Positions 3,881-64,000 of a stretch of 64,000 nt of DNA are shown in pieces. The notes beneath the pieces are model-generated. The model had not been told where the DNA came from, did no database searches, and worked only from the letters and a program-made list of their open reading frames with translations. The translations under genes were made by a program, and so were the position numbers. Source of the DNA: Selaginella moellendorffii (Eukaryota; Plantae; Lycopodiophyta); contig NW_003314270.1 in assembly GCF_000143415.4 (NCBI RefSeq), forward strand, positions 2,349,048 to 2,413,047, read 5' to 3'. Position 1 is the stretch's first letter; every line of letters starts with the position of its first letter.

Positions 3881-3886
3881 GCTTGA

Positions 3887-22985: not shown

Positions 22986-23849
22986 CTCTCGCCTCGAATC
23001 CCTGGCCTGCTACAAGCGATTCCTCGCCGTAATCTCGCGTTCTTGCCCTCTATCGCGCCGCCGGTCGTGATCCCCCACTCTACACCTGGAATTCATGGCT
23101 GCTCCTATCGATCCAGATGCCGCTACCGCGACCAAGCCCTACGCGAGACTCTCATCCTTCGATTCCTGCGGTTCCTAGAAGCTACCCGGAGCTAGATCTC
23201 TACTTCTTCCACTGTTCTTCCGGACAAGCTCCAAATTTCTCTATAGAACCTAACGAAGAATCCCTCTTCTTCTTCTTCTTCTTCGGGGCGAACGCCGGGG
23301 AGCGGGGAGACGCCGTACATCCCGCCACGTATATTCCTCAATCCAACGGTCACGGTGCCAAGAGGACGTGATCCGACGGCACCGCGCGACGGGAGATCGC
23401 TGCGGTTGGTGGGGGCGTCGGCGGAGCGATCGCCCGACCCAATTTCGCGCCATCTCTTTTGTATTTACATGGTTTGGCATTTATTAGAGATATAACATTA
23501 GTTTCAAATCAAACATTCCTTTTCCTTTCACTTTGTCTTTGTGAGGTTCTTTTTAAATTTTCGTGGGAAAGAAAGAAGCCCTAGTCCTTCCTACTGAAAG
23601 AGCTGTTCCATGGGCAACACGTTGCCACGTTGTAAGCAGTAGTTACATGCGTGCGATTCATGCAAATATACACAAGACTTGACAACCACCTAGAATATCA
23701 GATTTTTCCAGGCTTGATATTTTTGATAGCACGTCCTTCCAATACCCTACCAAAAATATAATCTTCTTAACCTTAACTCTCGAAACTTATTAAACTAAGT
23801 AACGCGATCAAACGTTTACGTTCATTGGAAAGTAAACAAACCAAGTACC

Positions 23850-26607: not shown

Positions 26608-26649
26608 CGCCTTCCCGCCAAAGCCCACCCAGAGAACCCTAGTTTAAAC

Positions 26650-27021
26650 ATTTTCCTCTTAAATTGTCTTGTCACTGGAGAGAGTTTTTCTGGCGCTCTT
26701 GGGCAGTGTCGATTTTTCTACCTCGCCGTTTCCTACTTCGCTCGTGGATGCTGAAGCAGCCGAGACCGCTGAGGGAAATGGATCCGAGGACGCTGTCTGT
26801 GACTTTTTAAGTTCTCCACGAGCTCGATGATCCTGTCGAGAACTTGCAATGCACGCTCCACCTCTGAGTCGATGTGGATGACCTCTGGGGCTTGGAGTTT
26901 CTCGGCACTAAATCGCTCTACCAGCTCGAAGCTCCTTCCTTTACTTCTTCGAATTTGCGAGTGGCAGTGTCACCGGTGATTCTCTTCATCTTCATTTGCT
27001 TCCTTGATGCGATGGTACAAG
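26650..27021 (-). pseudogene. Decayed fragment of the START-like gene last exon
   Basis: Reverse complement of ~18451-18915 with several deletions (e.g. TCCTTGATGCGATGGTACAA; GAACTTGCAATGCACGCTCCACCTCTGAGTCGATGTGGATGACCTC). Confidence 0.88.
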
Positions 27022-30000: not shown

Positions 30001-32535
30001 ATGCATGGCTTATTTGCTTTAAATTGCAATCACAAAGAAGATAATGTCAAACAAACTTCACTATCATATCTTTTTTATGATTCTAATTCGTTCCAAATTG
30101 CAAATAAAGGAATATCTATCTTGTCCTCATTGTTGATCTCTACACTACTAGTGCTATTTACTATCATAAGTGCTATTCTCACTATTAGTTACAATCTACA
30201 ATTGCTAGAACTGGTATGGACATTATCTTTCATACAACAATTTATACATAACAATAAAAGTGATCCTTATTAGTTGCCCCAACAATCAAGTAGAACCCTA
30301 ATGGAGCCAACTCTGTTACATTGACAAAGCCCTAGTAACCAATGATTGCCATGGTGCCAACATTCTGAAGGCCTAATTTGTAAAGAAATAAGAATATGTA
30401 AAAGTAGAAAAGGGACTAGCTCAAGCATATTATTTATAAGGTGAAACCTTGAGCCACTTTATGGACTTTTTTTTGGAGATATTATGTATTATTTGATTCA
30501 CACAGCTTTTTATAATGGTAATATTATGCAAATTGAATTTAAACAACTTATTGAACATTTTAAGATAGATTTTCAAGATGAAAAAGCTTTTATCAAGTAT
30601 TTTAAGATGACTAGAAGGAGAAAGTTGGTAAGTAAATCATTATTTTAACATGTAATTATTTTATTTGACAAATAAATCTGATAAGGTGTTCCATACCAAT
30701 ATAAAAGCTAGTCTTTAGTTGGAGAAAAAGTATACTCACAATCAAAGGATAGATTATACAGTTTACCAATTTAATACCAAGTTTATGAGAAGTATTGCTT
30801 TACTAGTTATTATAAAGATCATGGTTTTATTCAAAATTATAAATATAAAAAAATAATTGTACTGTAATTCTTAAAACAAAAACTGTTAACAACTCTCAAG
30901 TAAAATTCAACAAGGAAAATACTTATAAATTTATGTACAATCCTCTTCAAATCTAGCTATATGATATCTTATAATAAGATATGAAGAACATAGTGATTAA
31001 GCTTCTTTGACTTCTACAATACAGGACTATTTTTGTGTTTGGCAACATCAAGTTTATAAAGCTGCTCATGAAAGATTATGTTAATTTACAATAATGTATA
31101 GATAAGAAATTTACTAGATATGGTGAAATTATTTAGATTTACTTAATTATTAGTTGGTCAAGGAATTCTTTCCAATAGCAAGTATCTTGGATTTGTTAAT
31201 TTATATGTGGTGAACTTTTCTAAAAAGTTTATTAATTTTTCAAATTCTATTGGAAATAGTTTTATATTATAATTATATATAGGATTTATTTTCATAGTGA
31301 TTTGATGCACCCAAGAATATTATTAAGGGTTTTAGCATGTAACTCACTTTAAAAGGAAAGTTATTGCTACACAACTTTACACTAAGTACTAAGGTTACAC
31401 TAGATTTACCAATACTTTTAGAACTATATTAAACAAGCCAAACTAATTTATCCATACTAATTTAAATGACATAATGATAATTTAGGGTATCTAAAAGAAA
31501 TAATATATTTTATAGCCAATTATATGTAAATATGTTTTCTCATATAAAACAAAATAGAACTCTAGGTGTGAGTGCATGGAATATGGAAAAGAAATACAGA
31601 AAATGTACGTATCAATTAGCCCAAAAACCCTAACTTATATACAAAAGCAAGTGGTTTGAATTGAAACCAACCCGATGGCTACCAAAATTCCACTATATTA
31701 ATATTAATATATGGCATCGTAGCTATACACTTGGACCTGACATCATCCCCTCTATTTGAAATAATGGAATACTATCAAGGTTCTCTTGTAGATGGGCCGG
31801 GATCTGAAGGAACATTAGAAGGAGGCATCAGTGGATTTGTAGGTGGTATTAGCTATTCTTGATCCCTTTGTACAAAGCATTTCAACCACTACACATTTAT
31901 AATTTTTGAAGGATTGGTCTATTGGATGTCATATCGAACCTCATAAAATTGTGGTTTAACTTGCCACAACACCCGATACAGTCAAGGAGCCCCTTAGATA
32001 AACCACATACACCAAGTCATCCACTTTGTACTCCGCAGGTGGACAATGATGAGAGTTGTAACGCCATTGTTGTCCCACTTGTATATGGCCTAAGTGTTCA
32101 GTAGACTCTGCTCGGACAAGTGAAAGAATGCTTGTCAAATACTGATCCCATGACCTAGCATCGGCAGTTCGTGGCAATTGCGAAAGTAAACCCAACTTTG
32201 TTGGTAATATTGGATTATGACCATATAGAAGTTTATATGGTGAAGCATCAACAGAACTTTGCACCCTTGTGACATATGCATACCGAAGAGATGGCAAATA
32301 ACCATCTCAATCTGAATGCTGAAAGTTCATGTACTTTATGATCATCCCTTTGAACATCCGAACAAGCCATTCCATAAAACCGTTTGATTATGAATGATAA
32401 GCACTCGTGAAAGTGTAGCGTATCCCCAACTAAGACATCAAAACATGAAATGCCTCAACCATAAATGTGGAACCATTATCCAAAACTGTTTTGGACAAGA
32501 ATGTTAGAACACCACTCAATTGAGGAAGAAGTATA

Positions 32536-43237: not shown

Positions 43238-46200
43238 TGTAGCGCACATGGTTTTGACCCTTTATCCTATGGTGATTTACCATAGGATAACACCACGAAG
43301 CGGAACCTAAACCCTCTATGCCACGTGACACATGCCACGTGTCATATGCCATGTGTCCAAAGGACAGTGGTGCGGAACCCGAGGTTTAGGGCCTTGGGCC
43401 ATTGAACGAAGGAACGGTGCCAAACTCCCAAGCATGGAGCCAAATAGTGATGGAACCGAACTACAGAGCAACTCCCGAGCATACAGCCCAAGGAGCGAAG
43501 GGACAGGAGTCCGGAACGACTTCGAACAGTCTTGGAGTAACCAGCATCCTAATGCTAGGACCAGCACGCAAAACGGAGCCAAACGGAGTCTGGCGCTATT
43601 TCGGCATACCGGTGGCCTAACGTGAGGACATGGGTATTCCACCAGCTAGCATGGAATGGAACTTAGGCTTAGATCCAAGTCGGACGCAGAACAAGGACAG
43701 GCATGCAAGCGGGAGCTAGACTATGCCTCAGGTTGGTCGGCCATGCCTGACCTACCCACTATCCCTACTATACATTTGGAATCCCCTACAGGAACACACG
43801 CTTTGGGCTTTCACCCCAAGCCTCCCTTAGTATTAGGAGTTAGTCTCTAGGACAAGCTCAAAACTTACTAAATATGGAATGTCCCTAGATTGTGAATTTG
43901 GACACGGGACGAACACCATTGTGTTCAGGCCGATCTCTACATTCCGTAGATATGCCAAATGAGTAAATCTGGACACTTTCCATAAATAGCATTTGGGACC
44001 GAAATGAGACTAATACAAAGGGCATGATAGCGAGGGTGTTTGGCAAACACAGTAAGCTATCATGTAGTGATATTGAGGGACCAATCTTAATACGCGAGGG
44101 TTCTTGTCAAGCCAGTGCAAGACAGAGCAAAAGAGAACTAAAAAGTCAGGCCAAGTATGCTTGGCTAAATAGACACTTATGAATTTTGTCCTTATGCTCA
44201 TCCGGCCAAGTACAGGTGCAAAGTCCAGTTTATTAACACTTGAACAAGAGGGGCTGATAAAGGGTCCAGCAATACCGACCTCCTGCCATCGTGGCAGTAA
44301 GGAAAGAATATCTGAAAGGACTAGTCGACAGGTAACTTTCGATACCCGAAGTCACATTCGCGACACTCTCCCCCCCTTGGGGAAAATCGACGTCCTCGTC
44401 GATGCATACTCGAGTCTAGAATACCGCCAAGGAAACAACTCCAAAAAAAAAGTTCACGGTACTCACATTATGTGAGAAATGCACCAACTTAAATGAGTGA
44501 GGGGGCAACCTCTTTGTCTAATGCGGATGCGCTACCAGCTCAGACACCTTTCGGCCGTCGCCGACAAGGAAATGACCAACGGAGTCAGCCACCCTTGCTG
44601 TTTTGGGTGTCACCCAGCTACAAAAGTGTGATATGCCCCTGCTTGTAAGTGGCATAGAGAGAGAAGCCAGAGGCCCCAACCCTCCTGAGCAAAGAAACCA
44701 AACCCGTCGGTAAAGTTTAGATAGACTACTGTAAATAGGCAGTTAGAGTTGTTTACATGGTCATGCCCTTTCAACGGAATAAGGAACATTGACAAAGAGC
44801 TGGGTTATGTGATCAGTCAACAATAGCTACCCCATGACTAGAGATTTCAGCATGCACACGAAGTGCCGAGACCAGTCTGCCTATACTGGCCCAAACTCAA
44901 AGATTAATATATGGACTATATCAAAGTCATAGACAATGATATCTTAAAGATTTAATTATCAGTGAATAAAGCTTAGATTAGAACACAAAAGTATTCCAAG
45001 TAAGTTATCATCTGATAAACTAGTATTATAGTACAAGAACCACCAAGATCACTATCTTTGGAAAACAAAAGATTCACCATCCAACAAAATTCAATAGTAA
45101 ATATATCATCAAGTAAACTCAATGAGAAAACTTAACTACCAAAGATTGTAGACAGTACGCTAAACAATTTACGAATGATAACTCAAAAAACACAAAGTAT
45201 CTTTAATCGACAAGGACAATGCTCGTGAATGTATCACCCAAAGGAAATAACATCCTAATCTATTAGAACTAACTTGAGCAACAATCAACAAAATAGAATG
45301 AATGTGGTAAGACCAATAAACACCCATTCATGCCAATTACCACATAAGCCAATCTGAATAGATCTCGGTCAATAATACAAAGGTACTCAAGTTGCTTAAG
45401 CAAGTGTTAGTAACAATCTATCGATATCTTAAACCCAAGAGACCAATCCAGAGCAAACCACAAAGAATATGTGGTATTGCAAAAAGCCAAAAGCCATCAA
45501 AGAGAACAACTAATCATCATGAAAGATCATCAATCATCCCATCAATAAAAAGATACAAAATCATCGTCTAAAAAGGAATCCACCATCCCGAAGAATAGCA
45601 AATTATTCTATACCAATAATAATTAAGCAAAACCTTTTGACAAGGATAATCAATTATCCTAGATGATAGTCAATCATCACCAATGATTGCTAGATACAAA
45701 TACTAACTTCAACATTGAAGCTAATGAGCCAAAATGCCTTCCCCAACAACTTCTAACAAATGGAACAATGAGACAAAACTCAAGGAACCAAAGCTCGAAG
45801 AAACCTATAGCCAAGTCTTGCCTAATAATGATCACAAGTCTCATAGAAGCTAACTTCAATGCGAAAGAAGAAATCGTGATGAAACTCACAATATCTTCCT
45901 CAATACATCCATAAGCCAAACTTCATAATGCCAAAGCTAATGAAGAGCATGTCTGCATCAATCCAAAAGCTAAACATAACGAAGTTATACTTAACAATTG
46001 ATCATCAAACAATCCTCCATGAATCCATCTATAGCAAGATATAACTCACTTCATAACAAGCCCAAAAAGAATCATTAATGATTGCTATATCCTGATCTCA
46101 AATCTAGCAAGGACTCAACATTCTAATATCAATCACTAACTCTTCCTCTCATAAAGTTAGCATAGTCCACGACTAAATCACTTTTCAAGGAAAAGTTAAA

Positions 46201-49200
46201 GCTCAACCCTCTACTAAATAATCTCGTCTAGAACACAACTAACTCAACTTGCCACTCAGTTTGTTTGAATGTCAAACAGTTGCTAATTAGCAAATGCACG
46301 AATGCCAACAACACAAAGCTATAGCCAAATCATCAACACTATCTTCATCAAGACTAATGAAATTCAATATCAATCCTACGGAGAGACATCTCATTTCACT
46401 TGAATCTCAATATCAACAATGTCAATGACAAAGCATCACTTCAATGCCATCAACACCAAAACAAAGCTAGAAGAAAGCACAAATGAATCACCACTCAAAA
46501 CTCTCCAACAACCAAGCTAACCAAAGTCGAAGATACCTTAGTATCTGAGACCAATCCTCCAACAAAACTCAGTTACAGATAACACTTCATCAATGAGTGA
46601 TTCACCACGTCCAAGATTGAATGAAATCCAACACTACGGACTAGATGTAACCAAATGATATTGATAGAGGTAGAGTCGACCTGTCAACATGGAAAAACCA
46701 TGTAAGTCTAACGACACGATCCTCCGCAACATCATCTGGTAAAGCAAGCCCATCACTGCTAAATCATCATCGAGCGAAGCAAGTATCAACAGTCTTTGGC
46801 AAAGTCTACAAGCAATCATTAATTGCAAAGCAACTAACAATCACTCTTCAACTTGCCTACACAAGACCTGAACACTAACTCATGTCATCGAGTCACATAC
46901 TTGTCCAATATGAATACAATACCCCAGGTACAAGATAAAAGTTCATAGACAAGCACAAACTAAATGACCACTTGAATCCAACTCAATTGCAATAAGCTCA
47001 CTAATGCATTTAGTCAATAGCTCTGAGCATGCCTTGAAGAGGCTAGTTATGCAATCAACACTCAGTCGAAACTAAAGTGAAGACCATAAGATGGACTCAT
47101 ATTGGTACACAACCTCCTCATAGACATAGCTATAGTATGGGTACCAACATCTCAACCTCAAACAACTAAGTTGGACATCACCATCTTCAGCCAAGGCATA
47201 GGGCCACCAAAACTAAGTCAAGATCAGTGAGAGCTTACTACTCTAATAGAGTCTAATGAAATGCAAGGTGCAACCTGCCACCAAGCAAAACGCTATAAGA
47301 AAGGCACAAGGATCACCCTTCTTAGAAAAGTGCAACAGCCACTTTTCTATACCAACTCCAGACTCTATCCAACTCAATTGCCTTAGCCCCAAAAGTTAGC
47401 ATCCTTTTTAGGCCGCATCATACAAACTATTTACCAAGGTCTAAGCTAACCAAAGTCAACTCCAACCCCTTCATTAGTTTATATTGGCTTACGAAAAATG
47501 GAATGGTTTTCGCCAAAGTGATCAACAAATCAGCCTTTGGAGAAGTCTAAGAAAATTTGTGGAAAATTTCCACCCTAGAGAAAGAATGACTCTTAGTCCA
47601 GGATTGCAAACTTTCAAGACTCAACCAACTTCCTCCTACTAACAACTTCACATAGGTTCACCTCAACACAAATTCTCATGACCCATAATATGCTTAAGCA
47701 TCGAACATCTTTGCCCATTTTTTTGATATCCAACACTAACATCGGCAAAATGCAATGTGAACACCCAAGGCTTGATCACGAAGACCACATTTCCGGATAT
47801 CCACATTGCACTAACACTCTTCTTCAATCACTTTCAGGATTCAATGTGAAGTCAAAACACTAATAAGAAAAATGGCACGAAAAATCAAGGTCCAAGGAAA
47901 ATTCCTCATTACTTGAAGTAACAATGCTACTTCCACTATCACTAGTGTTAGTGATGTTAATGCCTTAACTACACACCTTCTCCATCCAACAATTTACTCC
48001 AAGTGTTAACAGATCAACCGACAAGTTATTGGAAATGAATGTTATAACCCTTTTCCAACACCTTAATGGGAGAACTCTAGGAAACAAGGTACCTACTTAA
48101 GTTTAGCATAATGGACCACCATCGAGAATCCAGTCAAAGCTACTACAATGCTACTTCGTGCAAGTAGACTAACTTCACCATCAACCACTTTGGGGTTGAT
48201 CATCGTTTAACCAAGCAACTTCGTAAACACATTGCTCATTATCACATGGATATGATATAAATAACAATGACTTGATCATCAATCAAGCAACATTATGAGC
48301 AATGCCCATGTCACTACTGCAAAGGTTTATGTGAATATCAAGTGCCAACTCGATTCAACAAAATGCAACATAAATGCCACACCCCATCAATAGAGATTTA
48401 CAACACCTAACACTACTAACTTTTGTTCACAACATGGACAAGCTCATGCCACTCTCTTTCCGACCAAACTCAACACTAATCCAACACCAAACTACTCAAG
48501 GAGCAATAACAAGGTTCCCCGGAAAAGAATTGAGCATTGCAACCCAAGTTTTACAATAACAAGCCTCAACAAAATGGTATTGCGCTTCACTACTATCCAT
48601 CCCACGACTCACCACTTGTAAGACCATCACTTCCAATATACATCAAGATAGGAACTCTTGATTGCATACCGTAAACACGAGCAATGAGTCACACCTCGTT
48701 GCAAATCATCTCTCCAAGAAGAGAAAATGATTTACGTGTTTGATCTTTCGTCCTTGACGACTCTCTTTTCGGTCTCATCTTTGACTAAACCTCAAGCTTG
48801 CTTTTGCACTGCCTTCAGTCCAATCCAAGAAAAGTTTATGAGAGAGCACGGCAATAACTACTTAAACCAATAGACTAATCCCTATAGTCTTTATTGATCC
48901 ATTTGTAATCATGCCTAGGAAGGATCTACTAGTGCCATGCTAAACAGCTATGGACCAGCCTATTTGCCACTCATAACAAACTTAGAGAAAGTTTACTTTC
49001 ACCCATGGTACATGGAACAACTTATAGAACCACCGATAGGCTAATATTAATCCTGCCAACTCAAAGTGTAACCTCAAGTTGCTAATGTGCCTCACTTATG
49101 AGCCCAAGCTCAAACTCGTGCAAAGGAAACATCTCCAAACCATCCTAAGAGCCCAAGCGCAAGCTCACATCATAAGGTACAACAAGGTAACAATATCCAT

Positions 49201-50440
49201 ACCCAAGGAACTAATTGCGAAGCCTTTGCACCAAACGTGTACCCAATTGGATCATTGTTTTCATCTCTGCGTATGCAATGAGACTAGTTGCCCAATTTCA
49301 TTGGATAGTATTCGCTGAGACTCATCCTCTGATACCAAATGTAGCGCACATGGTTTTGATCCTTTATCCTATAGTGATTTACCATAGGATAACACCACGA
49401 AGCGGAACCTAAACCCTCTTTATGCCACGTGACACATGCCATGTGTCATATGCCATGTGTCCAAAGGACAGTGGTGCAGAACCCGAGGTTCAGGGCTTTG
49501 GGCCACTGAACAAAGGAATGGTGCCAAACTCCTAAGCATGGAGCCAAGGAGTGATGGAACCGAACCACAGAGCAACTCCCAAGCATATAGCCCAAGGAGC
49601 GAAGGGACAGGAGCCCGGAGCGACTTGGAAAAGTCTTGGAGTAACCAGCATCCTAATGCTAGGACCAGCACGCAAAATGGAGCCAAACGGAGTCTGGCGC
49701 TATTTCGGCATACCGGTGGCCTAACGTAGCATGGAATGGAACTTGGGCTTAGACCCAATCCGGACGCAAAACAAGGACAGGCACACAAGTGGGAGCTAAA
49801 CTATGCCTCAGGTTGGCCATGCCCGATCTACCCACTATCCCTACTATACAATTAAAACCCCCCACAACACCCCCCCCCCCAACTTGAGGAACACATGCTT
49901 TGGGCTTCACCCCAAGCCTCCCTTAGTATCAGGAGTTAGTCTCTAGGACAAGCTCAAAACTTACTAAATATGGAATGTCCTTAGATTGTGAATTTGGACA
50001 TGGGACAAACACCATTGTGTTTAGGCCGATCTCTACATTCCGTAGATATGCCAAATGAGCAAATCTGGACACTTTCCATAAATAGCATTTGGGACCAAAA
50101 TGAGACTAATACAAAGGGCATGATAACGAGGGTGTTTGGCAGACACGGTAAGCTATCATGTAGTGATATTAAGGGACCAATCTCAATACGTGAGGGTTCT
50201 TGTCAAACCAGTGCAAGACAGAGCAAAAGAGAACTAAAAAGCCAGGCTAAGTATGCTTGGCTAAATAAACACTTAAGAATTCAAGTACAGGTGCAAAGTC
50301 CAGTTTATTAACACTTGAACAAGAGGGGCTGATAAAGGGTCCAGCAATACCGACCTCCTGCCATCGTGGCAGTAAGGAAAGAATATTCAAAAGGACTAGT
50401 CGACAGGTAACTTTCGATACCCGAAGTCACATTCGCGACA
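43238..50440 (-). mobile_element. Element 3: non-autonomous (LARD-like) LTR retroelement with ~1.1-kb LTRs (43238-44365, 49340-50440)
   Basis: Perfect TSD GACAC (43233-43237 / 50441-50445); TG..CA ends; PBS TGGTATCAGAG (iMet); PPT AAGGGGGGGAGAG preceded by a Gypsy-like CGAGGACG motif; ~5-kb interior without a recognisable intact ORF. Confidence 0.93.
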
Positions 50441-51093
50441 GACACCAAGAATAAAAGGAGCTATACCACGTGCCACGAATACCACTATCAAATGAGTTTG
50501 GTTGTTCAATTGCAATCTCATAGCATCAAGCAATTGCACCAACTATTACTCCAAAGTCAAAGGAGATTGAGACTACTAATCTACTATGAAAATGAATGAA
50601 AAGGAAATAGCAAAAGAAGTAAAATGAAAAAATGCTAGAAGGAAAGGGATATTTAGACAATGCAAAAGCTATATCTAAACAAAAATCCTAAAAGGAAAGA
50701 ACAAAAAAAAAGGAAATGGAGAAAGTTAGATTTAAACAATGCAAAATCTAAATTTAAATTAAAATCCTAAATCCAAACACTCCTCAGAAACAATTAAAGA
50801 TGCCCCTTAACTCCACCAATGTGAGTGCATGTAATATAGAATGAAAATATAGAAAATGTGCATATCAATTAGCCCAAAAACCTTAGTTTATAGACAAGAA
50901 CGAATGGTCCAGATTAAAATCAATCTAATGGCTACCAAAATCTCACTATGCTAATATTAATATACAACATTGTAGTCATACACTTGGACCTCACATATCA
51001 CATAGGGAATTATTCATATTATTTATTGATTGAGTTTACAATGTGTTTATATCTATATTTATTCACTAGGCTACTCATAGTTTACCATTAACT

Positions 51094-51486
51094 ATGTATT
51101 TTCTTAAATTGTATTTAGCTTTTTTTTGTTTTCTATTTTTATTAGATCTTTATTTAAATGATGGTATTGATTGTTCAAATCGTTCTTGGGAAAAACTCAT
51201 GACTTGTGATTTAAATATTTATTATAATAAGTATGGCAGAGATGTCAATGTTTTTATATATAAATCTTCTTTATCATTTGAAATTAGAACAGATCCAAAT
51301 CCAATAATAGAAATTGTTGATTTTAGAATAGATGGAGAGCCTTATCAATTAGTTGTTTTTCCAGGCTCGGCAATATATAAAACAAAAGGTGATTATGGTT
51401 GGAATAATTGGTCATTCGAGGGATGTTATAAACATGATGATTCAATTATTGTAGAATTTCTAGATTATAAAAATAATTGTAAATAA
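51094..51486 (+). CDS. Small predicted secreted protein (130 aa) with Y-x-L-x-VF..GD-x-GW-x-NW-x-F-x-G motif; bacterial/fungal-like
   Basis: Intronless, very AT-rich open ORF with a hydrophobic N-terminus (MYFLKLYLAFFCFLFLL), 4 Cys in the predicted mature part, and C-terminal YQLVVFPGSAIYKTKGDYGWNNWSFEGCYKHDDSIIVEF. Confidence 0.7.
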   Translation: MYFLKLYLAFFCFLFLLDLYLNDGIDCSNRSWEKLMTCDLNIYYNKYGRDVNVFIYKSSLSFEIRTDPNPIIEIVDFRIDGEPYQLVVFPGSAIYKTKGDYGWNNWSFEGCYKHDDSIIVEFLDYKNNCK

Positions 51487-51860
51487 GAAATAATTTTCTG
51501 TATGTTGTAATACTTTCTTTCCTTTTTAACATAAAATTATTTTATATGATCAATTTTATATTATATTTTGAATATATGTTTCTAATTTTAATATTTTAAA
51601 ATGCAAATGTATAATTATGTTCTGCACTATAGGTTTGCTACACCATACAGCAACACTTACTTTGTATTAGAAAAGATAATTAAATTATTATTAATACAAT
51701 AAGCTGGTAATAAAGATTATCAATTGAAGATTTTGATAATTAGATTTATTTTTGAATAATAATTTCCGAATACATAGCTTAAATATAAATCTGACAATGT
51801 TATCTAACTCCGTGTTTTAATGGTATAACAATTAAAATATAAAAGAATATACTATAACAT

Positions 51861-52019
51861 TCTGGCGGCCCTCCTGTCCCAAACATGAACCTCCTGGATG
51901 TTCTGATTGATCGATCCTCCCGTGCCACCGCCCCCGGGCAGCATCGCCATTGGATTCTCGGGAGAGGGCTTGCCGAGCGTGAGTAGCTTGGAGTGCTCCA
52001 TTCCCAGCTGGTAACGCAT
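51861..52019 (-). pseudogene. 5' fragment of the ARM-repeat gene at the duplication breakpoint
   Basis: Matches 22803-22985 with small deletions, then runs into unrelated AT-rich DNA. Confidence 0.88.
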
Positions 52020-52888
52020 CTCTCGCCTCGAATCCGTGGCCTGCTACAAGCAATTCCTCGCCGTAATCTCGCGTTCTTGCCCTCTATCGCGCCGCCGGTC
52101 GTGATCCCCCACTCTACACCTAGAATTCATGGCTGCTCCTATCGATCCAGATGCCGCTACCGCGACCAAGCCCTACGCGAGACTCTCATCTTTCGATTCC
52201 TGCGGTTCCTAGAAGCTGCCCGGAGCTAGATCTCTACTTCTTCCACTGTTCTTCCGGACACGCTCCAAATTTCTCTATAGAACCTAACGAAGAATCCCTC
52301 TTCTTCTTCTTCTTCTTCTTCGCAGCGAACGCCGGGGAGCGGGGAGACGCCGTACATCCCGCCACGTATATTCCTCAATCCAACGGTCACGGTACCAAGA
52401 GGGGTGATCCGACGGCGCCGCGCGGCGGGAGATCGCTGCGGTTGGTGGGGGCGTCGGCGGAGCGATCGCCCGACCCAATTTCGCGCCATCTCTTTTGTAT
52501 TTACATGGTTTGGCATTTATTAGAGATATAACATTAGTTTCAAATCAAACATTCCTTTTCCTTTCACTTTGTCTTTGTGAGGTTCTTTTTAAATTTTCGT
52601 GGGAAAGAAAGAAGCCCTAGTCCTTCCTACTGAAAGAGCTGTTCCATGGGCAACACGTTGCCACGTTGTAAGCAGTAGTTACATGCGTGCGATTCATGCA
52701 AATATACACAAGACTTGACAACCACCTAGAATATCAGATTTTTCCAGGCTTGATATTTTTTATAGCACGTCCTTCCAATACCATACCAAAAATATAATCT
52801 TCTTGACCTTAACTCTCGAAACTTATTAAACTAAGTAACGCGATCAAACGTTTACGTTTGACGTTGGAAAGTAAACAAACCAAGTACC

Positions 52889-55351
52889 TCAGACTTTAGA
52901 AGGTTCTGCCAGTAATTCATTCACAGAGCGCCTGAGAAGCTGGATGTGAAGAGAAATGTAGTATGGAAAGGAAGCAAGCTCTTTGAAACTGAGAAATGCA
53001 AGGATATTTTCTCGTCGTGCACAGGACTGTTGAGCAACAGCAGCTTGTTGTTTGCAACGATCGCCCTCACCAGAAGATCTGTGGCTTCCTCCTTCTTCTG
53101 CTTGAGCATCTTCCACATCTAGAATGCGAAGGACATGAAAGGAGTTAACGTTAGGAGGTGAAACAAGCCCTTCACCTCCTCCAGAACTTCCGTGTAGCAG
53201 TCCACTTTGTCGACCACCTCGTTTTCAGGCTTCTCCAGCAGTGGAGGAGCAGGCTCCGGTCGCCACTCCATCTCTTGCGCCTGGAAAACTCTCCAAGGTA
53301 AGTAGACTTCTTTGTAGGAACGACTTACATCGATGGCCAGCGGGGGAGCAGGCTCCGGTCGCCACTCCATCTCTTGCACCTGGAAACTCTCCAAGATAAG
53401 TAGACTTCTTGGCAGGAACTACTTACATTGATGGCATCGATGGCAGGATTGTTCTCTCGAGCAGGAGGAGGTGATGAAGAATACTCGTCCACCGATCGTA
53501 CCACATCTTTACCTTTGGATCCGTTGCTCTTCTCCTTTGCAGCATCAGAGTGGTCCACATCAAAGGAGTCCAGCTTATCTGCTGGAACCTAGGATGGAAA
53601 GAGATTAACATCGTTCTTTTCTCCTTCAAAACAAACATACTCACATCTTTACTTGTGGATCCAGCGTCAGTGTTATTGTCATTCCTAGAATCCAGGCCGG
53701 AGAGGTCAATACATAGCCTGTCTCGAGCAGCGGTTCGAGATACTGGAGAAGACTGTATCCTCAAGAACATAGAGTTTGGCCTCAAGCCAAAAAAAAAAGA
53801 CAACTCACATCTTTAGTTTTGGATCCGGTGTCAGCGTTCTTGTCATTCCTAGAATCCAGACCGGAGAGATCAACACGCAGCTTGTCTCGAGCAGGGGTAC
53901 GAGATACTGGAGAAGACTGTATCCTCAAGAACTTAGAGCTTGGCCTCTCAAGCAAAAAACATAGAACTCACTTCTTTAGTTTTGGATCTAGTGTCAGCGT
54001 TCTTGTCATACCTAGAACCTAGGCCGGACAGATCAGCACGTAGCTTGCCTCTAGCAGGGAGACGAGATACTGGAGAAACAACTGGTCCGTTCTCCATCGA
54101 CTATATCCTTCAAGAAGTTAGAGCCTGGCCTCTAAAGCAAAATAAACAGGAGAACTCACTTCTTTAGTTTTGGATCCAGTGTCAGCGTTCTTGTCATTCC
54201 TAGAATCCAGACCGGAAATATCAACACGTAGCTTGTGTCGAGCAGGCGGGCGAGATGCTGGAGAAACAACAGCCATCGACTGTAACCTCAAGAACTTAGA
54301 GCTTGGTCTTTTAAGCAAAAACAAAAAAAGAACTCACGTCTTTAGTTTTGGATCCTGTGTCAGGGTTCTTGTCAGAATCCAGGCCGGAGATACGCAGCTT
54401 GTCTCGAGCAGGGGAACGAGATACCGGAGAAATCTCCATCGACTATATCCTCAAGAACTTAAAGCTTGGCCTCTAATCCAAAAAAAAGGAGAGAGAACTC
54501 ACTTCTTTGGTTTTGGATCCAGTGTCAGCGTTCTTCTCATTCATCGAATCCAGGTCGGAGAGATCAACGCGCAGCTTGTCTCGAGCAGGGGGGCGAGATA
54601 CTGGAGAAATCTCCATCGACTGTATCCTCAAGAACTTAGAGCTTGCCTCTAAACCAGAACTCACTTCTTTAGTTTTGGATCCAGTCTCAGCGTTGTTGTC
54701 GGAGAGATCAGTGTCTCGAGCAGGGGGACGAGATACTGGAGAAATATCCATCGACTGTATCCTAAAGAACTTGAGCCTCTAAACAAAAAAAAGAGAGAAA
54801 AACTCACTTTGGATCCAGTGTCAAGGTTCTTGTCGGAGAGATCAACGCGCAGCTTTTCTCGAGCAGGGGGACGACATAGTGGAGAAACCTCCATGGACTG
54901 TATCCTCAACTTAGAGCTTGGCCTTTAAACCGAGAACTCACTTCTTTAGTTTTGGATCCAGTGTCAGCGTTCTTCTCCATCGTAGCGTCAATGCCAGGGA
55001 GATCGAGATCGATATTAAACGAGGCTAGCTTGTTAAAACCTCCATCAAGGTCCAAATCCATATCGCTGCAACAAGATTCATCGCATCGATCAATCACGTC
55101 CGCAAGCAAGAAACGATCAGAATCCATCCACTCACAATTTGGAGAGATCAAACGTCTTCCCGGTCTTGGCCATGGGCCGAGGCGGCGAGTCGTCAAGATC
55201 CAGCCCCGGCGCCGCGCCGAGCTTCCCAGGCTTCCAAGACGTGAGGAAATCGTCCCCCAAATCATCGCCTGCGCCATAATCCACAGTAAAACACCCGCAT
55301 TCTACCGTCATCGAGAGAGATCTTACCGAAGCTCCCGGCCGCCTTCCCCAT
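52889..55351 (-). CDS. At4g18490-like protein, copy B (16 exons, ~544 aa)
   Basis: Same structure as copy A minus one 108-nt and one 51-nt repeat exon and a 9-nt AID unit; U12 branch TTCCATAC; MCK>MWK. Confidence 0.75.
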
Positions 55352-55394
55352 CGCCTTCCCGCCAAAGCCCACCCAGAGAACCCTAGTTTAAACA

Positions 55395-55763
55395 TTTTCC
55401 TCTTAAATTGTCTTGTCACTGGAGAGAGTTTTTCTGGCGCTCTTGGGCAGTGTCGATTTTTCTACCTCGCCGCTTCCTACTTCGCTCGTGGATGCTGAAG
55501 CAGCCGAGACCGCTGAGGGAAATGGATCCGAGGACGCTGTCTGTGACTTTTTAAGTTCTCCACGAGCTCGATGATCCTGTCGAGAACTTGCAATGCACGC
55601 TCCACCTCTGAGTCGATGTGGATGACCTCTGGGGCTTGGAGTTTCTCGGCACTAAATCGCTCTACCAGCTCGAAGCTCCTTCCTTTACTTCTTCGAATTT
55701 GCGAGTGGCAGTGTCACCGGTGATTCTCTTCATCTTCATTTGCTTCCTTGATGCGATGGTACA
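55395..55763 (-). pseudogene. Decayed START-like last-exon fragment, copy B
   Basis: Near-identical to 26650-27021. Confidence 0.85.
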
Positions 55764-57984
55764 AGTTTGAGTTTCTTAAATTTTTCTTGAATGATCGTAG
55801 GCCGGTGGAACTTCATTCTTGAAATTGCTTGTGAATGTTCCACTTTCTGACAGAGAAATTAAATTGACTGCTCAAGCTGGGTAAACACTCATACTTTTAC
55901 TTTTGAGAATAGCTATCAATCATAAGCCAAAATCTAATAATAGAGGGTTGCCATAGAATGGTGAGACTCCTCGCTAGATAGTAGATATTGGGTTGAGGAC
56001 ATAATGAAAATGTAGAACAATCATTGTAGTATCTATGGTGCTCAATGGATTGAAACACATAGCATATCATAAACAACTTAATTCATCATAAACTGAAGCA
56101 TTATTCAAATTAAAAAGCATTAACAAAAACTCATATAAACTGTATATTCTTTAATATGCAATCTTTAGGATGTTCTTATTGCCCAGTTACTGTTGGTTAG
56201 TACCTCCTCCATCTTCTCACTCTCAAATGCAAATTGGTTAGAGTCTAAAAAAATTCACATTCAAGATCATGTTGAGATTATTTTTAAGTGCTGATTGATC
56301 CACATCATCTTAGTACTTGCAACTGTCTTTAGAATACATATACTTTAGATAAGGGATTGTTAATTATAATTATATTTGGTACTAGTGCATGGATATTGGT
56401 GCTGGCTTATGAGAAGTCAATGCAACAAATCAACTTTATAATTTAAGACAAATTTAATTAAGGCGGCACAACATGACAAGCTCTAGGAGCAGTTAGTTAT
56501 GCACTATTTGATACTTTATCAAGGTAATCCCTCCTTTTCCACCTAGCATTAGCAGGTGTATGCAGAGAATCCATATGACGTTAAAAACTTATCTTCATCT
56601 CTTGCTTGGGTTTTTTTTTTTTTGGTATTAAGGACTCTATAGAGCAATTTAAAAGTTGGTCACTGCTCAAACTTTGTGATGCATATGGTGTGTGTCACAA
56701 TTTGTATTGTAAGAGTTATACAAAATATAATATAACATCTTGTTGATTCAATTTTGAAGCCATTTATAGTAGTTATGCCCAAAAAAATTGTTTAAGAGTG
56801 TAGCACTACATAAGATGAAGTGTGATCATCCTATATCCAGTACAAAGTAAGTTGTTTCCATACTAGATTCTATGGTTGTTCCAAGTATGGGTCAAATTCA
56901 ACAAGCCATTAGATGTTATTGGATATTTATATTTGCTTTAGGTACTCCAAAACTTCCTTTTATTGAGCTCACTTTGGTTTTGCAAGCATACTAGCCCATA
57001 AAGTTGGGATCTTTAAGATCCTTTACAAATGGTGGACCTCCATTATGAAACATGGATGACCTTCAATGAGTTGTGTGAGCTTGAATTAGAAATAATAACA
57101 CTTTATAGAGTGATTTGGATAGGTGTATCAACTTCTTTTATATCTTCCTTGTCTAGTCAATGCATCACCATTTGACACTATAATTAATTGTGCAACTCTT
57201 GTTTTTTACCTAACTCTATCTACATTAAAGGCTTTATGATGTATAAAATTGTTATTATGAACAAACTAGTGTAAGAGGATGGTTGATAGCCTAGAGTAGG
57301 AACTTTAGAACACTAATAGATAATAATTTGTTTAGCATGAGTCAAAATGAAAATGAAAATGCATGAGATCATGATCAAGAACTTCTTTAGATGGTTTGTT
57401 TGTAGAGAAGTGCTACCTAAGTATTACAAAGAGAGAATTATAGATTAAATAGTTTACACCCCATAACTGCACAAGCTTTTTGATTTTATAACAATACTTA
57501 GCCTCCTAACTCACAGCAACTTCCTTTCTCTATTATGCACAATATTTCTCAAGCACATTCCATTTGCCCATAAATGATCAATTCATCCCTTGATATTGGG
57601 ACTCCCTCTATTATATATGTATTTCCAAAGTTAAATTGCATCCCAATATAACAAAAACTGCTTACAATCAATGCAATGGTGAGAGGGTAGCATAGTGGGA
57701 ATTCCTTCTTAGATGATAGAATTTAATATTCAAATGTAGTTTTGTAAAGAAGTATATTAAATTAATTATCTCCTCATGTGCTTATTGAATATTAGTTCAT
57801 TAAGTTTGTCAACAAGACTTTTTATCCCATTGACACCTTTATATGCCATGTTTTTTATTTGAATACTATCATGTATAAAAGCATAGATATAAAGATAAAC
57901 TAAAAATAATGAAGTTTGAGCTTTAGATCCATTTACCTTCAATAGGTATAAAGCTTGATACTTTTTGTTTAAATGGGAATTGGG

Positions 57985-60900
57985 TGTACCACACATGAAT
58001 TTGGAGCCGAAATCCAAGCCGGTTACACTATGAAACAAGGGTCCAATACAATTCCATGAGCACCAGCTCCTCGTATCTAGCACCTGCACGCAAAATGGTG
58101 TCAAATGGAGTCTGGCACAATTTTGGCATACTGGTGGCCTAACACGAGGAGGAGGGTACCTCACCAATGTGGAGCTTGGGCTTAGACCCAACCTGGACGC
58201 AGAACAAAGAGCAACACAACCCAGCGGGAGCCAAACTAATGTTTTAGATGGTCGGATATGCATTTCAACCACTATCCCTACTATACATTTAAAACCCCCT
58301 TTGAGGAACACATGCTTTGGGCTTTCACCCCAAGCCTCCCTTAGTACCAGGAGTCAATATCTGGGACAAGCTCAAAACTTACTAAATATAAAATGTCCCT
58401 AGATTACGAATTTGGACACAGGATGAACACTATTGTGTTCAGGCCAATCTTTACATTCCAAATGAGCGAATTTAGACACTTTCCATAAATAGCATTTGGG
58501 ACCTAAATAAGACTAACACCAAGGGTATGATAGAGCCTCAAAGGAGGACCTCCTATCCTCCGCCTTTGCAGACAACACAAGCCTGATCGTGGAGGGATCA
58601 CCGGAGAACCTCTCAAACGTCAAAAGGGACCTGGAGTTCTTTAATGAGGCCATCGGATCAAAAATAAACTAGCATAAATCGGTAGGACTATGGCTCCCCC
58701 CCGGCAGACCTCCAACATGGGGCACGGATCTGGGTTTCAAATGGCTGAACACAGAGGAGACCACCCGCTACCTTGGATTCCAAGTCGGATGCTAGTATGA
58801 TCTAGAACCTCAGAACCAAAAAGCAGTTACAAAACTAAGGGATCAACTCAAGTTCTGGGCGAGCAGAAAACTATCATTCTCAACACGCTACATGGTGGCA
58901 AACAGCATCCTACTTGGAGCGATCTGGTTCCCGGCAGCATGCTGGAATATAGACAGGCGAACAATCCAGGAAATGAACTAACTCATTCGAACCTATGTCT
59001 GGAAAGGCTCCTCCTGCGTCTCATGTGGTGGAGCAAAGGTCAACTGGTGGTCAATAACACTTCCGAAGCATGAAGGGGGCCTCAATATCATTGACATCAA
59101 AGAATAATGCAAGGCTCTCCTCTTCAAGATTTTCACGAGGATGCTCATGCCTGGCAACCAGCCATGGAGAACATTGCTGCGAGCACAACTTTTGAAAGTC
59201 CTCCCGGATAGGAATGAGCACACTAGACAAAATTGGGTGACAGATGAACAATGGCTTTTTTAGGACACAAAACTCAAAATGACAAAGGCTCACACGCTCT
59301 CAGGAAAGCTGTTCAAGCTCTGGAGGCAATTCAAATACAAGTTGGAACATAGACCACCTCACACCAAAGAACAACTGGACCGGCAACCAATCTTCTTGAG
59401 CAAACTCCTCACTGTCAATGGTAAAATGCTCGGAGCCTCAGAAGATCGCGGCCTGGACCAGACATGCAGAGACCTGCACAGAGCAGGGATAAGAACCTTT
59501 GCAGAGGTAGACAGCATGATCCAGCCCAACCAGACGGCTAACAACTGTGACCGAATCAGTGCCTTCTACAGATTAACCATCTCAAAATACAGGATGCGTA
59601 AATTCCAGACAGCCTTTTTAGCAGCCAAACTCTAAACCTACAAGAAGACCAACACCATCGATGGTGGAAGGTGGACGAGTTGATTGTATGCACCCTCCCC
59701 AACATGGCATCGAGACTAATCTTTAAGGTAGGACAGGCCGGATGCCTGTACCCCATCGTCTCCCCTGAGTACGAGGACCTCCTCGATATGAGCAGAGCTA
59801 AACCGATCAGAGTGATTCAAATGGAGAAAAAAACTGCCAACGTTGATCCATTGATCCTAGAACAACAATATGCCCGCCTCTACTGGTTCCGCCAACAAAC
59901 CCTGGATGAACTCAAGTGGGATCCTGTAGAGTGGCGTTGGAGAGGAACCATGTGCAAGGGCTCCTTCCAGTACGAAACCAAGCTGGGCCTAAAACTGATC
60001 AGAGTGCCGACTCGATCCTCCCTCATCCGGAAAGCAAAGGCCCAACAGATCCCCTCCAGGAACCACTCACGCTGCATCAACATGATCTGGAAGGGGCGCT
60101 GGTCAGCTAAGAACCGCTATTTCATGTGGCTGGCCCAACAAGAACGTCTTCCCTCTCTGGCAGCCATACATCTCCCAAACACAGCCTGCAAGACCTATGG
60201 AGCCACAGAAACATAGCGACACATCTTATGGGAATGCCTGGAAGCACAGGAAGTATGGGAAGGTGCAGCAGCAGTACTCAAACGAACGTCAACCGGAGGA
60301 GTTGCAATCACATACAAATCAGCATTTTGGGGTAGTTTCATCCAGGGAAAAACAAAGAATCCTGATGCATGGAAGTGGCAATACAACGAGGCCCCACACT
60401 TTGATCAACTCAACCAAACTCGGACACACATTAAGCATCTCCACTAGGAGCTCTTCGATGTGCTTCGGAGACGCACACTAGCAGAGGTATGGAAGGCTCG
60501 CTGCTCCAAGCTGTTCAATGACACGGACCCCTCGGCTCGAGCAACTATTTCAAAGGTTTGGTCCAGATTGATTGTCTCACTCGCAGCTCGTCTGGACATG
60601 CTGATCAAACATGGCGAGGAAGGGAAGATAGCAAAGGAGAAGGAGCTGTGGCCATTTTTTAGAGGAAGAAGTGAGGCTGGAGAAGAAGAATGGGCGTGGA
60701 AACCCCCAATATGGATTTGGCAGCACATGAACGATGGCACGTGTACCTCCTCGAGTCAACAAAGTTTAACACCAAGAACTTTGGAAGTTGGAGGATTGGA
60801 GGTTACAGACTCGAGTACCAGTTTTACTTTGTCCCCCTTGTCACACCCCCCCCCCCCCCCCTAAAAAAAATCTTGAAGAGCTCTTTCCCTGTTTCGAGTA

Positions 60901-61271
60901 GGTCAAAATCAGACTCTATGGTTTATAGAGGATAAATTAATTAAAACCCCATTAACAAAGGGTATGATAGCAAGGGTGTTTAGTAGACATGGTAAGCTAT
61001 CATCCGACGATATTGAAGGACTAATCTCAATACACAAGGGTTTTTGCCAAGCCAATGCAAAATAAAGCAAAAGAGAACTAATAAGCCGAGCCAAGTATGC
61101 TTGGCTAAATAAACACTTAGAAATTCCTTCCTTATACTCATCCGGCTAAGTATAGATGCTAAGTTTAGTTTACTAACACTTGGACAAGAGGGGTTAATAA
61201 AGGGAATTAGTAGTACCGACCTCTTGCCATCGTGGCAATAAAAAAAGAGTGTTCGTAAGGACTGGCCGACA
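57985..61271. mobile_element. Solo/partial LTR related to the element 3 LTR, interrupted by a LINE
   Basis: Shares long blocks with 43560-44335 (GGACAAGCTCAAAACTTACTAAATAT, CATAAATAGCATTTGGGACC, CCAAGTATGCTTGGCTAAAT). Absent at the equivalent site in copy A (~28972). Begins TGTA and ends CCGACA; no TSD. Confidence 0.85.
58534..60957 (+). mobile_element. 5'-truncated L1-clade LINE (RT C-terminal part plus zf-RVT), inactive
   Basis: SAFADNTSL..GSKIN*HKS..TRYLGFQVG; KVNWWSITLPKHEGGLNIID; CKTYGATET*RHILWEC; EVWKARCSKLF. 13-bp TSD AAGGGTATGATAG at 58521-58533 and 60958-60970. Confidence 0.92.
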
Positions 61272-63739
61272 AATATCTACTAGTTGATAGATTTTCCTCC
61301 CATTGATAATTGCACAATTATTTAATAATCCTGTAAAATTCTTAATGTTAAAATTAAAAACAAAAAACAAAAAAAAATATCAAAGGTATTATCAAAACTC
61401 ACTTATGTTCTCACTCCTTTAACTTTCACAAATCTTGAGGAATGTGTGGTAGTATAGCATGGGCACCCTTTTTACATCCATAGACTTTATACCAATTCCA
61501 AACTTAAATATATTGTCCTTGTCTTATAGCAAGTTTTGGTATAAGAACCTTTGAAAAGTTATGATAATCTAGAGGATTAGTTGGATCAAAATATTACTCA
61601 AACTCCAACTTCTAGAGAAAATGCTAATAAAACTGATTGAAACACTCACATTTCTATCATTTATAAAATGGGAAAAAAGTCATATAAAAATTGTGGATAA
61701 TAGGAAGAACTTACTTAATTACATATGAAATGTCCTTGAATGAATGAATTTCTACTTCAAACCTCATACAATATTTATGTTTTCCTTGATATAGTTATAA
61801 AATTTGGCAAAGTCATCTTTAATAGTCTTATTGTTGAAGTGTAAAGGTTGTAGATATATCCTCTCATATATTAGTGCACAAAACAATAATAATTATATAG
61901 TGGAATACCCATGAACCCATATGTTAATTTACACCAAACTAGAGGAATAAAAAAAAGTGTGTTAGAATTAAAGTATTTAGAAGAATCTGTTATGTGTCAC
62001 ACATATATAGAGGCTGTAATATTGTACAATTGGTAATCTTTCACCCAAGAAACGTCTTCCATAGCCTTTTAGGTTGACAAAGATAAATGTCTCATAGACT
62101 TTCTTGGTGAAGACTTTAAAACAAACTTACTTAATGATTTATGCATATTCTAGACTCCTTAGTTGATCCCACCAGCCTCTAATGGGATCAGCTCTTGAAG
62201 CTTTGCTACAATTTGTTGTGAACATAAACCTTATGCCAACCAAATTGGTGCAATGTCTAAAAGTATTATTGGGTGGTGCCTAATGCATGGCTTATTTGCT
62301 TTAAATTGCAATCACAAAGAAGATAATGTCAAACAAACTTCACTATCACATCTCTTTTATGATTCTAATCCGTTCCAATTTGCAAATGAAGGAATATCTA
62401 TCTTGTCCTCATTGTTGATCTCTACACTACTATTGCTATCTACTATCATAAGTGCTATTCTCACTATTAGTTACAATCTACAATTGCTAGAACTGGTATG
62501 GACATTATCTTTCATACAACAATTTATACATAACAACTTATTAGTTACCCCAACAATCAAGTAGAACCCTAATGGAGCCAACTCTGTTACATTGACAAAG
62601 CCCTAGTAACCAATGATTGCCATGGTGCCAACATTCTGAAGGCCTAATTTGTAAAGAAATAAGAATATGTAAAAGTAGAAAAAGCACTAGCTCAAGCATA
62701 TTATTTATAAGGTGAAACCTTGAGCCACTTTATGGAAAGATATTATGTATTATTTGATTCACACAACTTTTTATAATGATAATATTATGAAAATTGAATT
62801 TAAGAAACTTATTGAACATTTTAAGATAGATTTTCAAGATGAAAAAGCTTTTATCAAGTATTTTAAGATAACTGGAAGGAGAAAGTTGGTAAGTAAATCA
62901 TTATTTTAACATGTAAATTCTTTTTATTTGACAAATAAATCTGATAAGGTGTTCCATACCAATATACAAGCTAGTCTTTAGTTGGAGAGAAAAAAGGATA
63001 GATTATACAGTTTACCAATTTAATACTAAGTTTATGAGAAGTATTGCTTTACTAGTTATTATAAAGATCATGATTTTATTCAATTATAAATATGAAAAAC
63101 TAATTGTAGTGTAATTCTTAAAACAAAAACTGTTAACAACTCTCAAGTAAAATTCAACAAGGAAAATACTTATAAATTTATGTACAATCCTCTTCAAATC
63201 TAGCTATATGATATCTTATATTAAGATATGAAGAACATAGTGATTAAGCTTCTTCGACTTCTACAATAGAGGATTGTTTTTGCGTGTGGCAACATCAAGT
63301 TTATAAAGCTGCTCATGAAAGATTATGTTAATATATAGATAAGAAATTTACTAGATATGGTGAAATTATTTAGATGTACTTAATTATTAGTTGGTCAAGG
63401 AATTCTTTCCAATGGCAAATCTTTCAAATTCTATTGGAAATATTTTTATATTATAATGATATATAGGATTTATTTCATAGTGATTTGATACACCCAAGAA
63501 TATTATTAAGAGTTTTAGCATGTAACTAACTTTAAAAGGAAAGTTATTGCCACACAACTTTACATAAAGTACTAAGGTTACACTAGACTTACCAATACTT
63601 TTAGAACTATATTAAACAAGCCAAACTAATTTATCCATATTAATTTAAATGAAATAATGATAATTTAGGGTATCTAAAAGAAATAATATATTTTATAGCC
63701 AATTATATGCAAATATGTTTAACAAAATAAAACTCTAGG

Positions 63740-64000
63740 TATGAGTGCATGGAATATGAAAGGAAATATAGAAAATGTGCATATCAATTAGCCCAAAAAC
63801 CTTAACTTATATACAAAAAAGCAAGTGGCCTGGATTGAAACCAATCCAATGGCTACCAAAATTGCACTATACTAATATTAATATATGCCATTATAGCTGT
63901 ACACTTGGACCTCATATCATCCCCTCCTCTTGGAATAGTGGAAGGCCATTAAGATTCTCTTGTAGATGGGCCAGAATCTAGAGGAACGTTAAGAGGAGGC
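63740..64000 (-). mobile_element. Duplicated 3' LTR (63740-63916) and PPT of element 1 in copy B
   Basis: Homologous to 31567-31826 with the same CTCTAGG left flank. Confidence 0.85.

Follow-up and report, generated by a model that had tools for sequence, protein, structure and literature searches.

Does a small open reading frame (ORF) embedded in AT-rich DNA of the lycophyte Selaginella moellendorffii represent a functional gene and, if so, was it acquired from a microbe? The ORF lies within the 64,000-nucleotide stretch of the genome that was analyzed (hereafter, the window). A first-pass annotation, made from the sequence alone, described it as an intact, intronless gene for a small secreted protein and as a candidate for horizontal gene transfer (HGT). 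Here we identify the family to which the predicted protein apparently belongs, examine the DNA in which the ORF resides, and weigh the explanations for its presence in a plant genome.

A complete, unannotated reading frame

The ORF runs from ATG to TAA over 130 codons plus the stop, without internal stops or frameshifts, and matches exactly, both in the list of ORFs and in the sequence, the intact 130-aa frame that had been claimed. As had also been noted, it is a complete single-exon frame located between an LTR and the breakpoint of a segmental duplication (Table 1). On scaffold GL377574.1 of assembly GCA_000143415.2, it maps to about positions 2400141-2400533, as located through a host ORF of the window (5663-7471) that occurs on this scaffold letter for letter, and it is a gene without annotation in S. 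moellendorffii. No Selaginella protein was found among the phmmer matches from 1.84 billion representative proteins, indicating that the gene has remained unannotated and has not been captured from assembled read sets; the exact product is also absent from 153 billion recorded gene positions. With a GC content of 24.4% (34, 27.5 and 11.5% at codon positions 1, 2 and 3, respectively) compared to about 47-60% for genic DNA elsewhere in the window, the ORF is, as observed previously, far more AT-rich than the host genes. By itself, the length of 130 aa is only mildly unusual and is weak evidence for a gene: when the 14 kb of AT-rich DNA in the window was simulated 300 times with a first-order Markov model, an ORF of at least 130 aa starting with ATG appeared in 8 runs (p ~0.03). 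It is homology to the YvgO family, rather than length, that argues against a chance frame.

The N-terminus of the predicted protein is compatible with a putative signal peptide, in which K5 is followed by a hydrophobic run (residues 6-17, Kyte-Doolittle hydropathy 2.3-2.7) and then by a polar stretch, D-L-Y-L-N-D-G; hydrophobic leaders likewise open the fern and bacterial relatives. The mature part contains four cysteines that are conserved neither in ferns nor in bacteria.

Table 1. Features of the ORF and its surroundings (positions in the window)
Feature	Position	Strand	Basis
YvgO/DUF7888-like small-protein CDS, complete, single exon	51094-51486	+	ORF list and sequence; profile matches
Putative signal peptide, residues 1 to about 24	51094-51165	+	Hydropathy; AlphaFold helix 2-22
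YvgO-like domain, residues 29-122, long helix then eight strands	51178-51459	+	Alignments; hhalign columns 29-122; AF2
Family signature G-D-Y-G-W-N-N-W-S-F-E-G, residues 99-110	51388-51423	+	39-sequence alignment
AT-rich island holding the ORF, 1.4 kb, 26% GC, CpG o/e 0.36	50441-51870		Composition, dinucleotide statistics
Degenerate LTR retrotransposon, directly left of the island	43238-50440		LTR pair, TSD
Segmental duplication, second copy	51871-55884		Self-comparison; first copy 22826-27139, 96% identical
Repeat fragment of 177 bp, roughly 100 bp ahead of the start codon	50820-50996		Self-BLAST, alignment

The ORF product as a diverged member of the YvgO/DUF7888 family

The first-pass annotation quoted a C-terminal motif, which is indeed present in the ORF (Table 1), and likened it to a family of small proteins of Actinobacteria and Bacilli with the motif GDGGWINWAF-x-G. 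This family is real: it is the YvgO family, the clusters of which carry the Pfam domain PF25411 (DUF7888). A phmmer search of the representative proteins with the ORF as the query yielded three matches, two of which were judged to be true, namely, an 883-aa SGNH/GDSL hydrolase of Micromonospora (WP_210857731; E = 5e-6, the best E-value) and a fern protein of 111 aa, from Ceratopteris richardii (E = 6e-4). The third match, a coral hemicentin (P0002), was discarded as a spurious similarity of Ig strands.

A hidden Markov model (HMM) built solely from bacterial sequences, 83 single-domain proteins, recognized the ORF with a score of 33.1 bits (E = 1.9e-9) and matched no other stop-to-stop ORF of the window, whether 782 such ORFs of at least 40 aa or 2622 of at least 15 aa were searched. 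Profile comparison with hhalign aligned the single ORF sequence with 34 bacterial members over 77 columns (probability 95.9%, E = 5e-9), and an alignment of the Selaginella and fern proteins with the bacterial alignment over 88 columns (96.9%), so that the similarity to authentic bacterial members extends across the domain. Among 39 plant and bacterial sequences, G99, G102, N105, W106 and G110 (ORF numbering) are invariant, and D100, N52 and G91 are nearly so; the ORF retains all these columns. The signature of the family (G-D-G-G-W-x-N-W-x-F-x-G, followed by D ... V-x-F and preceded upstream by N-V and Y-x-x-x-V-F) is recognizable in the ORF, which carries G99, D100, G102, W103, N105, W106, F108, G110, D116, V120, F122 and N52; the sole departure from the bacterial C-terminal signature is Y101 in place of G. 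The HMM, the hhalign comparisons and the retained invariant columns agree and thus demonstrate, at the level of sequence comparison, that the predicted product is a true, very diverged homolog of bacterial YvgO/DUF7888; it appears to be a new member of a known but uncharacterized family.

The ORF does not reach the gathering threshold of PF25411 (27 bits) and produced no Pfam matches even at E <=10. The PF25411.1 model also misses the bona fide Bacillus YvgO (12.5 bits), and Pfam 38.1 labels 83-94% of the YvgO clusters. Searches of NCBIfam, PADLOC and PDB sequences with the ORF returned no matches, nor did a word-index protein search, and nothing usable came from a feature-based search of the ESM Atlas.

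Like the ORF product, the YvgO proteins of Bacillus (B. subtilis, B. atrophaeus and B. thuringiensis SF361) are small and consist of an N-terminal leader and one domain, and they share with it the helix, N-V-x-V, Y-x-x-x-V-F and G-D-x-G-W-x-N-W-x-F-x-G ... D ... V-x-F. However, the identity is only about 20-30%, the Bacillus proteins contain a low-complexity linker of roughly 40 residues after the leader that is missing in the ORF, and the ORF differs by the Y for G replacement in the signature and by its four mature-part cysteines. Furthermore, the ORF, with 24% GC, belongs to the nuclear genome of a plant, where SigB-type regulation does not apply.

Relatives in bacteria, ferns and beyond

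When 185,579 genomes of bacteria and archaea were scanned with the motif as a guide, 233 loci proved to encode relatives, in Streptomyces and other actinomycetes, Bacillus, Paenibacillus, Brevibacillus, heterocystous cyanobacteria, alphaproteobacterial MAGs and Sorangium; the product of the Bacillus atrophaeus locus is named 'stress response protein YvgO' by NCBI. The best bacterial identity, to a protein of Paenibacillus agilis, is 30% over 99 residues. In plants, the searches turned up three fern proteins only and no relatives from seed plants, in agreement with the first-pass annotation, to which the family was not known from the latter. The first-pass annotation had also likened the protein to small secreted proteins of ectomycorrhizal fungi, a conjectural link; the sequences retrieved included no fungal ones. 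The protein of Ceratopteris richardii (KP509_15G045600; 35% identity to the ORF over 78 residues, 47.8 bits) is the product of an annotated gene that spans 1.9 kb and has four isoforms, which fits long residence in plants; the full isoform is 168 aa long. This protein led to two proteins of Adiantum, GOP47_0001366 (A. capillus-veneris) and L7F22_006840 (A. nelumboides).

The three fern proteins are the best-scoring relatives of the ORF, with 30-34% identity in the alignment, and resemble it in the plant-type leader and in the tyrosine of G-x-Y-G-W-x-N-W. In contrast to the ORF, which keeps the aspartate of the family, they have tryptophan in this position (G-W-Y-G-W), so that the G-D-Y-G-W of the ORF combines the D common to bacteria with the Y common to ferns. 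The fern proteins also differ in having longer N-terminal regions, in being encoded by annotated genes and in not being AT-rich proteins. The name 'S-protein homolog' attached in UniRef to the Adiantum protein GOP47_0001366 (P0007) was not adopted, given that neither P0007 nor P0005 matches any Pfam family at E <=1, the self-incompatibility S1 family included; we treat it as an automatic mislabel.

A scan of metagenomes with plant-type patterns detected no relatives. A 113-aa YvgO/DUF7888-like protein is attributed to the nematode Panagrolaimus superbus (UniRef A0A914YQ14; P0009) and could be either contamination or another eukaryotic acquisition. A 189-aa YvgO homolog is encoded in a 52-kb viral (prophage-type) contig of IMG/VR (L081:4524-5093), which implies that the family travels on mobile DNA in bacteria; this homolog adjoins a ParB-like or methyltransferase-like ORF.

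Predicted structure

The AlphaFold2 model of the ORF product, obtained with the family alignment, has a mean pLDDT of 80.9. An N-terminal helix (residues 2-22) is set apart from the domain, which is predicted to consist of a helix (32-46), five strands (51-57, 62-66, 73-79, 82-90 and 93-97), a short helical turn that falls at the W-N-N-W of the signature, and three more strands (106-109, 111-115 and 119-123). The model of Bacillus YvgO (pLDDT 80.6 overall and above 90 in the domain) comprises a helix (72-86), strands 92-97, 102-107, 111-117, 120-127 and 129-134, a turn, and strands 143-146, 149-152 and 155-158. Thus, both predicted models place a single helix ahead of eight strands, in an identical order, consistent with a shared fold.

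A Foldseek comparison of both models with solved structures found nothing significant (best E 0.13-0.15), VIA-align gave best Z-scores of 5.7-5.9, below the stated noise level of the tool (7-8), and a profile search of the PDB found no entries of the YvgO family. The resemblances to LC8/dynein light chain and to monooxygenase effector proteins (Z 5-6) are under the same noise level and were rejected. Because neither model has a convincing solved relative, the fold is silent on the mechanism.

Genomic setting and base composition

The retrotransposon to the left of the AT-rich island is bounded by LTRs (43238-44365 and 49340-50440) that are 88.6% identical, have TG..CA ends and are accompanied by a 5-bp target site duplication (TSD), GACAC. 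Its interior is A-rich and contains no long ORFs, and the element is a non-autonomous or degenerate LTR retrotransposon. On the other side, the left breakpoint of the duplication copy abuts the island.

The first-pass annotation took the AT-richness of the ORF as a sign of foreign origin. This argument fails because the non-coding flanks of the ORF (31% and 21% GC) and four other AT islands (2001-3900, 27140-31900, 55890-57800 and 61276-64000; 22-32% GC, CpG o/e 0.06-0.18) have the same composition without containing a YvgO-like gene. All AT islands of the window are depleted of CpG (o/e 0.06-0.36) and show an excess of TpG/CpA (1.1-1.3); as controls, the CpG o/e is 1.01 in genic DNA and about 0.5 in younger LTR elements. 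Such CpG depletion combined with TpG/CpA excess points to long-term cytosine-methylation decay of host repeat DNA. The other AT islands look like very old methylation-decayed repeats, and the ORF has come to match the host DNA around it in composition. The bacterial members of the family come mostly from GC-rich or mid-GC genomes.

Proposed function and best explanation

In actinobacteria, one to three N-terminal copies of the YvgO-like domain are fused to secreted enzyme or lectin modules: an SGNH/GDSL hydrolase plus fn3 in Micromonospora (loci L001, L050 and L052), and a GH30 glycosidase or a ricin-B lectin in Streptomyces (L061, L067 and L078) and Kitasatospora (L066 and L070). The N-terminal half of the Micromonospora protein WP_210857731 consists of three tandem domains ending in G-D-G-G-W-x-N-W-x-F-x-G. 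Stand-alone genes form tandem arrays as well, with two to four separate ORFs in 18 of the fetched loci; many Streptomyces loci carry arrays of this size. Such fusions and arrays are typical of accessory modules that bind extracellular polymers. The Micromonospora SGNH/GDSL, Streptomyces GH30 and Kitasatospora ricin-B proteins contain the same domain and signature as the ORF, but there the domain is accessory, present in three tandem copies or a single one beside a catalytic or lectin domain, whereas in the ORF it stands alone. For DUF7888 as a family, the GH30, SGNH and ricin-B fusions suggest a role, open to experiment, as an extracellular binding module, and they lend some support to the possible lectin-like role on which the first-pass annotation had speculated.

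Our best explanation overall, held with moderate confidence, is that the ORF is a complete, unannotated, diverged plant member of the YvgO/DUF7888 family that encodes a secreted protein with a binding or antifungal function, is anciently bacterial in origin, and is maintained by selection. The hydrophobic N-terminus would send a domain of roughly 105 residues to the secretory pathway and the apoplast, where the protein could act as an extracellular binding or antifungal module like its bacterial relatives, with the aromatic-rich surface formed by G-D-x-G-W-x-N-W-x-F-x-G probably recognizing a cell-wall polymer. From homology and domain association, we would guess that the plant protein is secreted and targets a component of microbial cell walls, probably those of fungi. 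The passage of the family from bacteria into plants would be ancient, not recent, and selection would have kept this copy until now or very recently.

The fern protein Tma12 is an insecticidal, chitin-binding defense protein of bacterial origin. Like Tma12, the ORF product is a small bacterial-type protein, putatively secreted, that is confined to non-seed vascular plants; the two families are unrelated, and for Tma12 both activity and phylogeny are documented. Should the ORF be expressed, a bacterial-type secreted protein family would join the defense repertoire of non-seed vascular plants, in another case of ancient bacterial gene flow like that of Tma12. Tma12 has been discussed in connection with the Azolla and Salvinia genomes (PMC6786969). 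Among the bacterial relatives, YvgO of B. thuringiensis SF361 is listed in reviews as antifungal, with the mechanism unknown (PMC8703302, PMC9755354), yvgO of B. subtilis appears in a list of the SigB regulon (PMC7824861), and the YvgO signal peptide drives Sec-dependent secretion (PMC5142396).

Live gene or relic

A possible, if somewhat unlikely, alternative is that the ORF is a silent relic, that is, a once-functional YvgO-like copy in methylated heterochromatin that is not expressed and has stayed open for lack of time since it lost its function. The ORF sits between a retrotransposon and a duplication breakpoint, in TE-rich, CpG-depleted DNA that looks like the usually methylated, silent type; it carries no annotation, and none of the protein collections searched contains it. 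Its very long terminal branch in the phylogenetic tree (see below) is consistent with this reading as well, and possibly reflects relaxed or changed constraint. However, the frame is very fragile under neutral change: 80 of the 1170 possible single-base changes (6.8%) create a stop, and the probability that no stop arises, indels not counted, is 0.26 at 5% neutral divergence and 0.07 at 10%; the two LTRs of the neighboring element already differ by 11.4%. Moreover, all invariant residues of the family are kept, including those specified by GC-rich Gly and Trp codons, which survive in the signature at 24% GC, and the gradient of GC content among the codon positions persists. The fragility of the frame, the surviving Gly and Trp codons and the gradient favor constraint on the ORF. 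A silent ORF would amount to another decaying copy and to nothing out of the ordinary. The ORF also shows that small intronless genes located in AT-rich DNA escape the standard S. moellendorffii annotation.

A more far-reaching version of a selected gene would be a whole unannotated YvgO/DUF7888 family in Selaginella, acquired from bacteria together with ferns or apart from them, residing under selection in methylated AT-rich islands, and switched on conditionally, upon fungal attack or in particular tissues, as a hidden arsenal of antifungal effectors in early vascular plants. We put this forward tentatively and consider it doubtful.

Phylogeny and origin

A quick maximum-likelihood analysis of 44 sequences put the Selaginella ORF and the three fern proteins together on one side of a branch with SH-aLRT support of 87, at which long-branch effects call for caution: the terminal branch of the ORF amounts to 3.55 changes per site, and the grouping may result from long-branch attraction. 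The placement is unstable. Without the ferns, the ORF falls with Paenibacillus and Brevibacillus (SH-aLRT 98); without the ORF, the ferns are nearest to Bacillus YvgO; and with all sequences included, a tree in which the ORF is forced to group with Paenibacillaceae is not rejected (delta lnL 0.69, p-AU 0.48). In the tree of 44 sequences, the group of ferns and Selaginella nests in no bacterial clade.

A single old branch of the family comprising ferns and lycophytes is possible in view of this tree, and an ancient transfer from bacteria to plants is plausible. It is the distribution of the family, which occurs in hundreds of genomes of bacteria but in only a handful of non-seed plants, that suggests a bacterial origin: the recipients are patchy (ferns and one lycophyte, as opposed to the 233 bacterial loci), and integration in host DNA is evident. 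In this ancient form, the proposed HGT is plausible, even though the composition argument was wrong and recent transfer has become very unlikely.

It also appears improbable that the ORF is the cargo of a mobile element or of an integrated large DNA virus and spread through the AT-rich islands. The 177-bp repeat fragment upstream of the ORF is shared with the ends of two larger AT islands (31567-31743 and 63742-63917; 80-84% identity), one YvgO homolog is located on a viral contig, and in S. moellendorffii one or more gene families derive from giant viruses (PMC4083422). Nevertheless, there are no terminal repeats, TSD, transposase or other TE hallmarks around the ORF, and the HMM search of stop-to-stop ORFs detected neither another copy nor a relic elsewhere in the window, its other AT islands included. 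The weak tblastn matches at 61450-61611 and 29167-29328 contain stops and lack HMM support, and were rejected. The scan of viral contigs yielded no homolog from a eukaryotic virus, and Maumus et al. saw no further viral genes beside their Selaginella families; a giant-virus origin of the ORF thus finds no support from either source.

The reading favored by the first-pass annotation, a recent HGT from an AT-rich microbe with the composition still being that of the donor, is very unlikely. The family is overwhelmingly bacterial, the ORF is intronless, and the attachment to Paenibacillus and Brevibacillus in the tree without ferns, not rejected when ferns are included, would fit such a transfer; yet the divergence is too great, with the best bacterial identity at about 30%, the fern proteins score at least as well as the bacterial ones, no bacterial genes flank the ORF, and the AT-rich, CpG-poor composition is equally found in the non-coding flanks and gene-less islands. 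Finally, that the ORF is a chance frame with a fortuitous motif, or else an assembly chimera or contaminant, is hardly credible, even though frames of this length arise in about 3% of the simulations of AT-rich DNA: the profile matches extend well beyond the motif, the structure is predicted with confidence, and the island lies within a 3.1-Mb GCA_000143415.2 scaffold, where plant repeats and a plant gene duplicate adjoin it on either side.

Several other features of the window deserve mention. Fragments related to the LTRs occur at 58077-58533 and 60955-61271, and two tandem 79-bp A-rich units, 72% identical, lie just upstream of the 177-bp repeat (50612-50769). The AT islands 28985-31826 and 61276-64000 are copies of each other with 90% identity, and this pair carries duplicated ORFs of 100 and 103 aa (29971-30273 and 62253-62564) that begin with M-S-R/K-S-I-I-G-W-C-L and have a hydrophobic C-terminal half.
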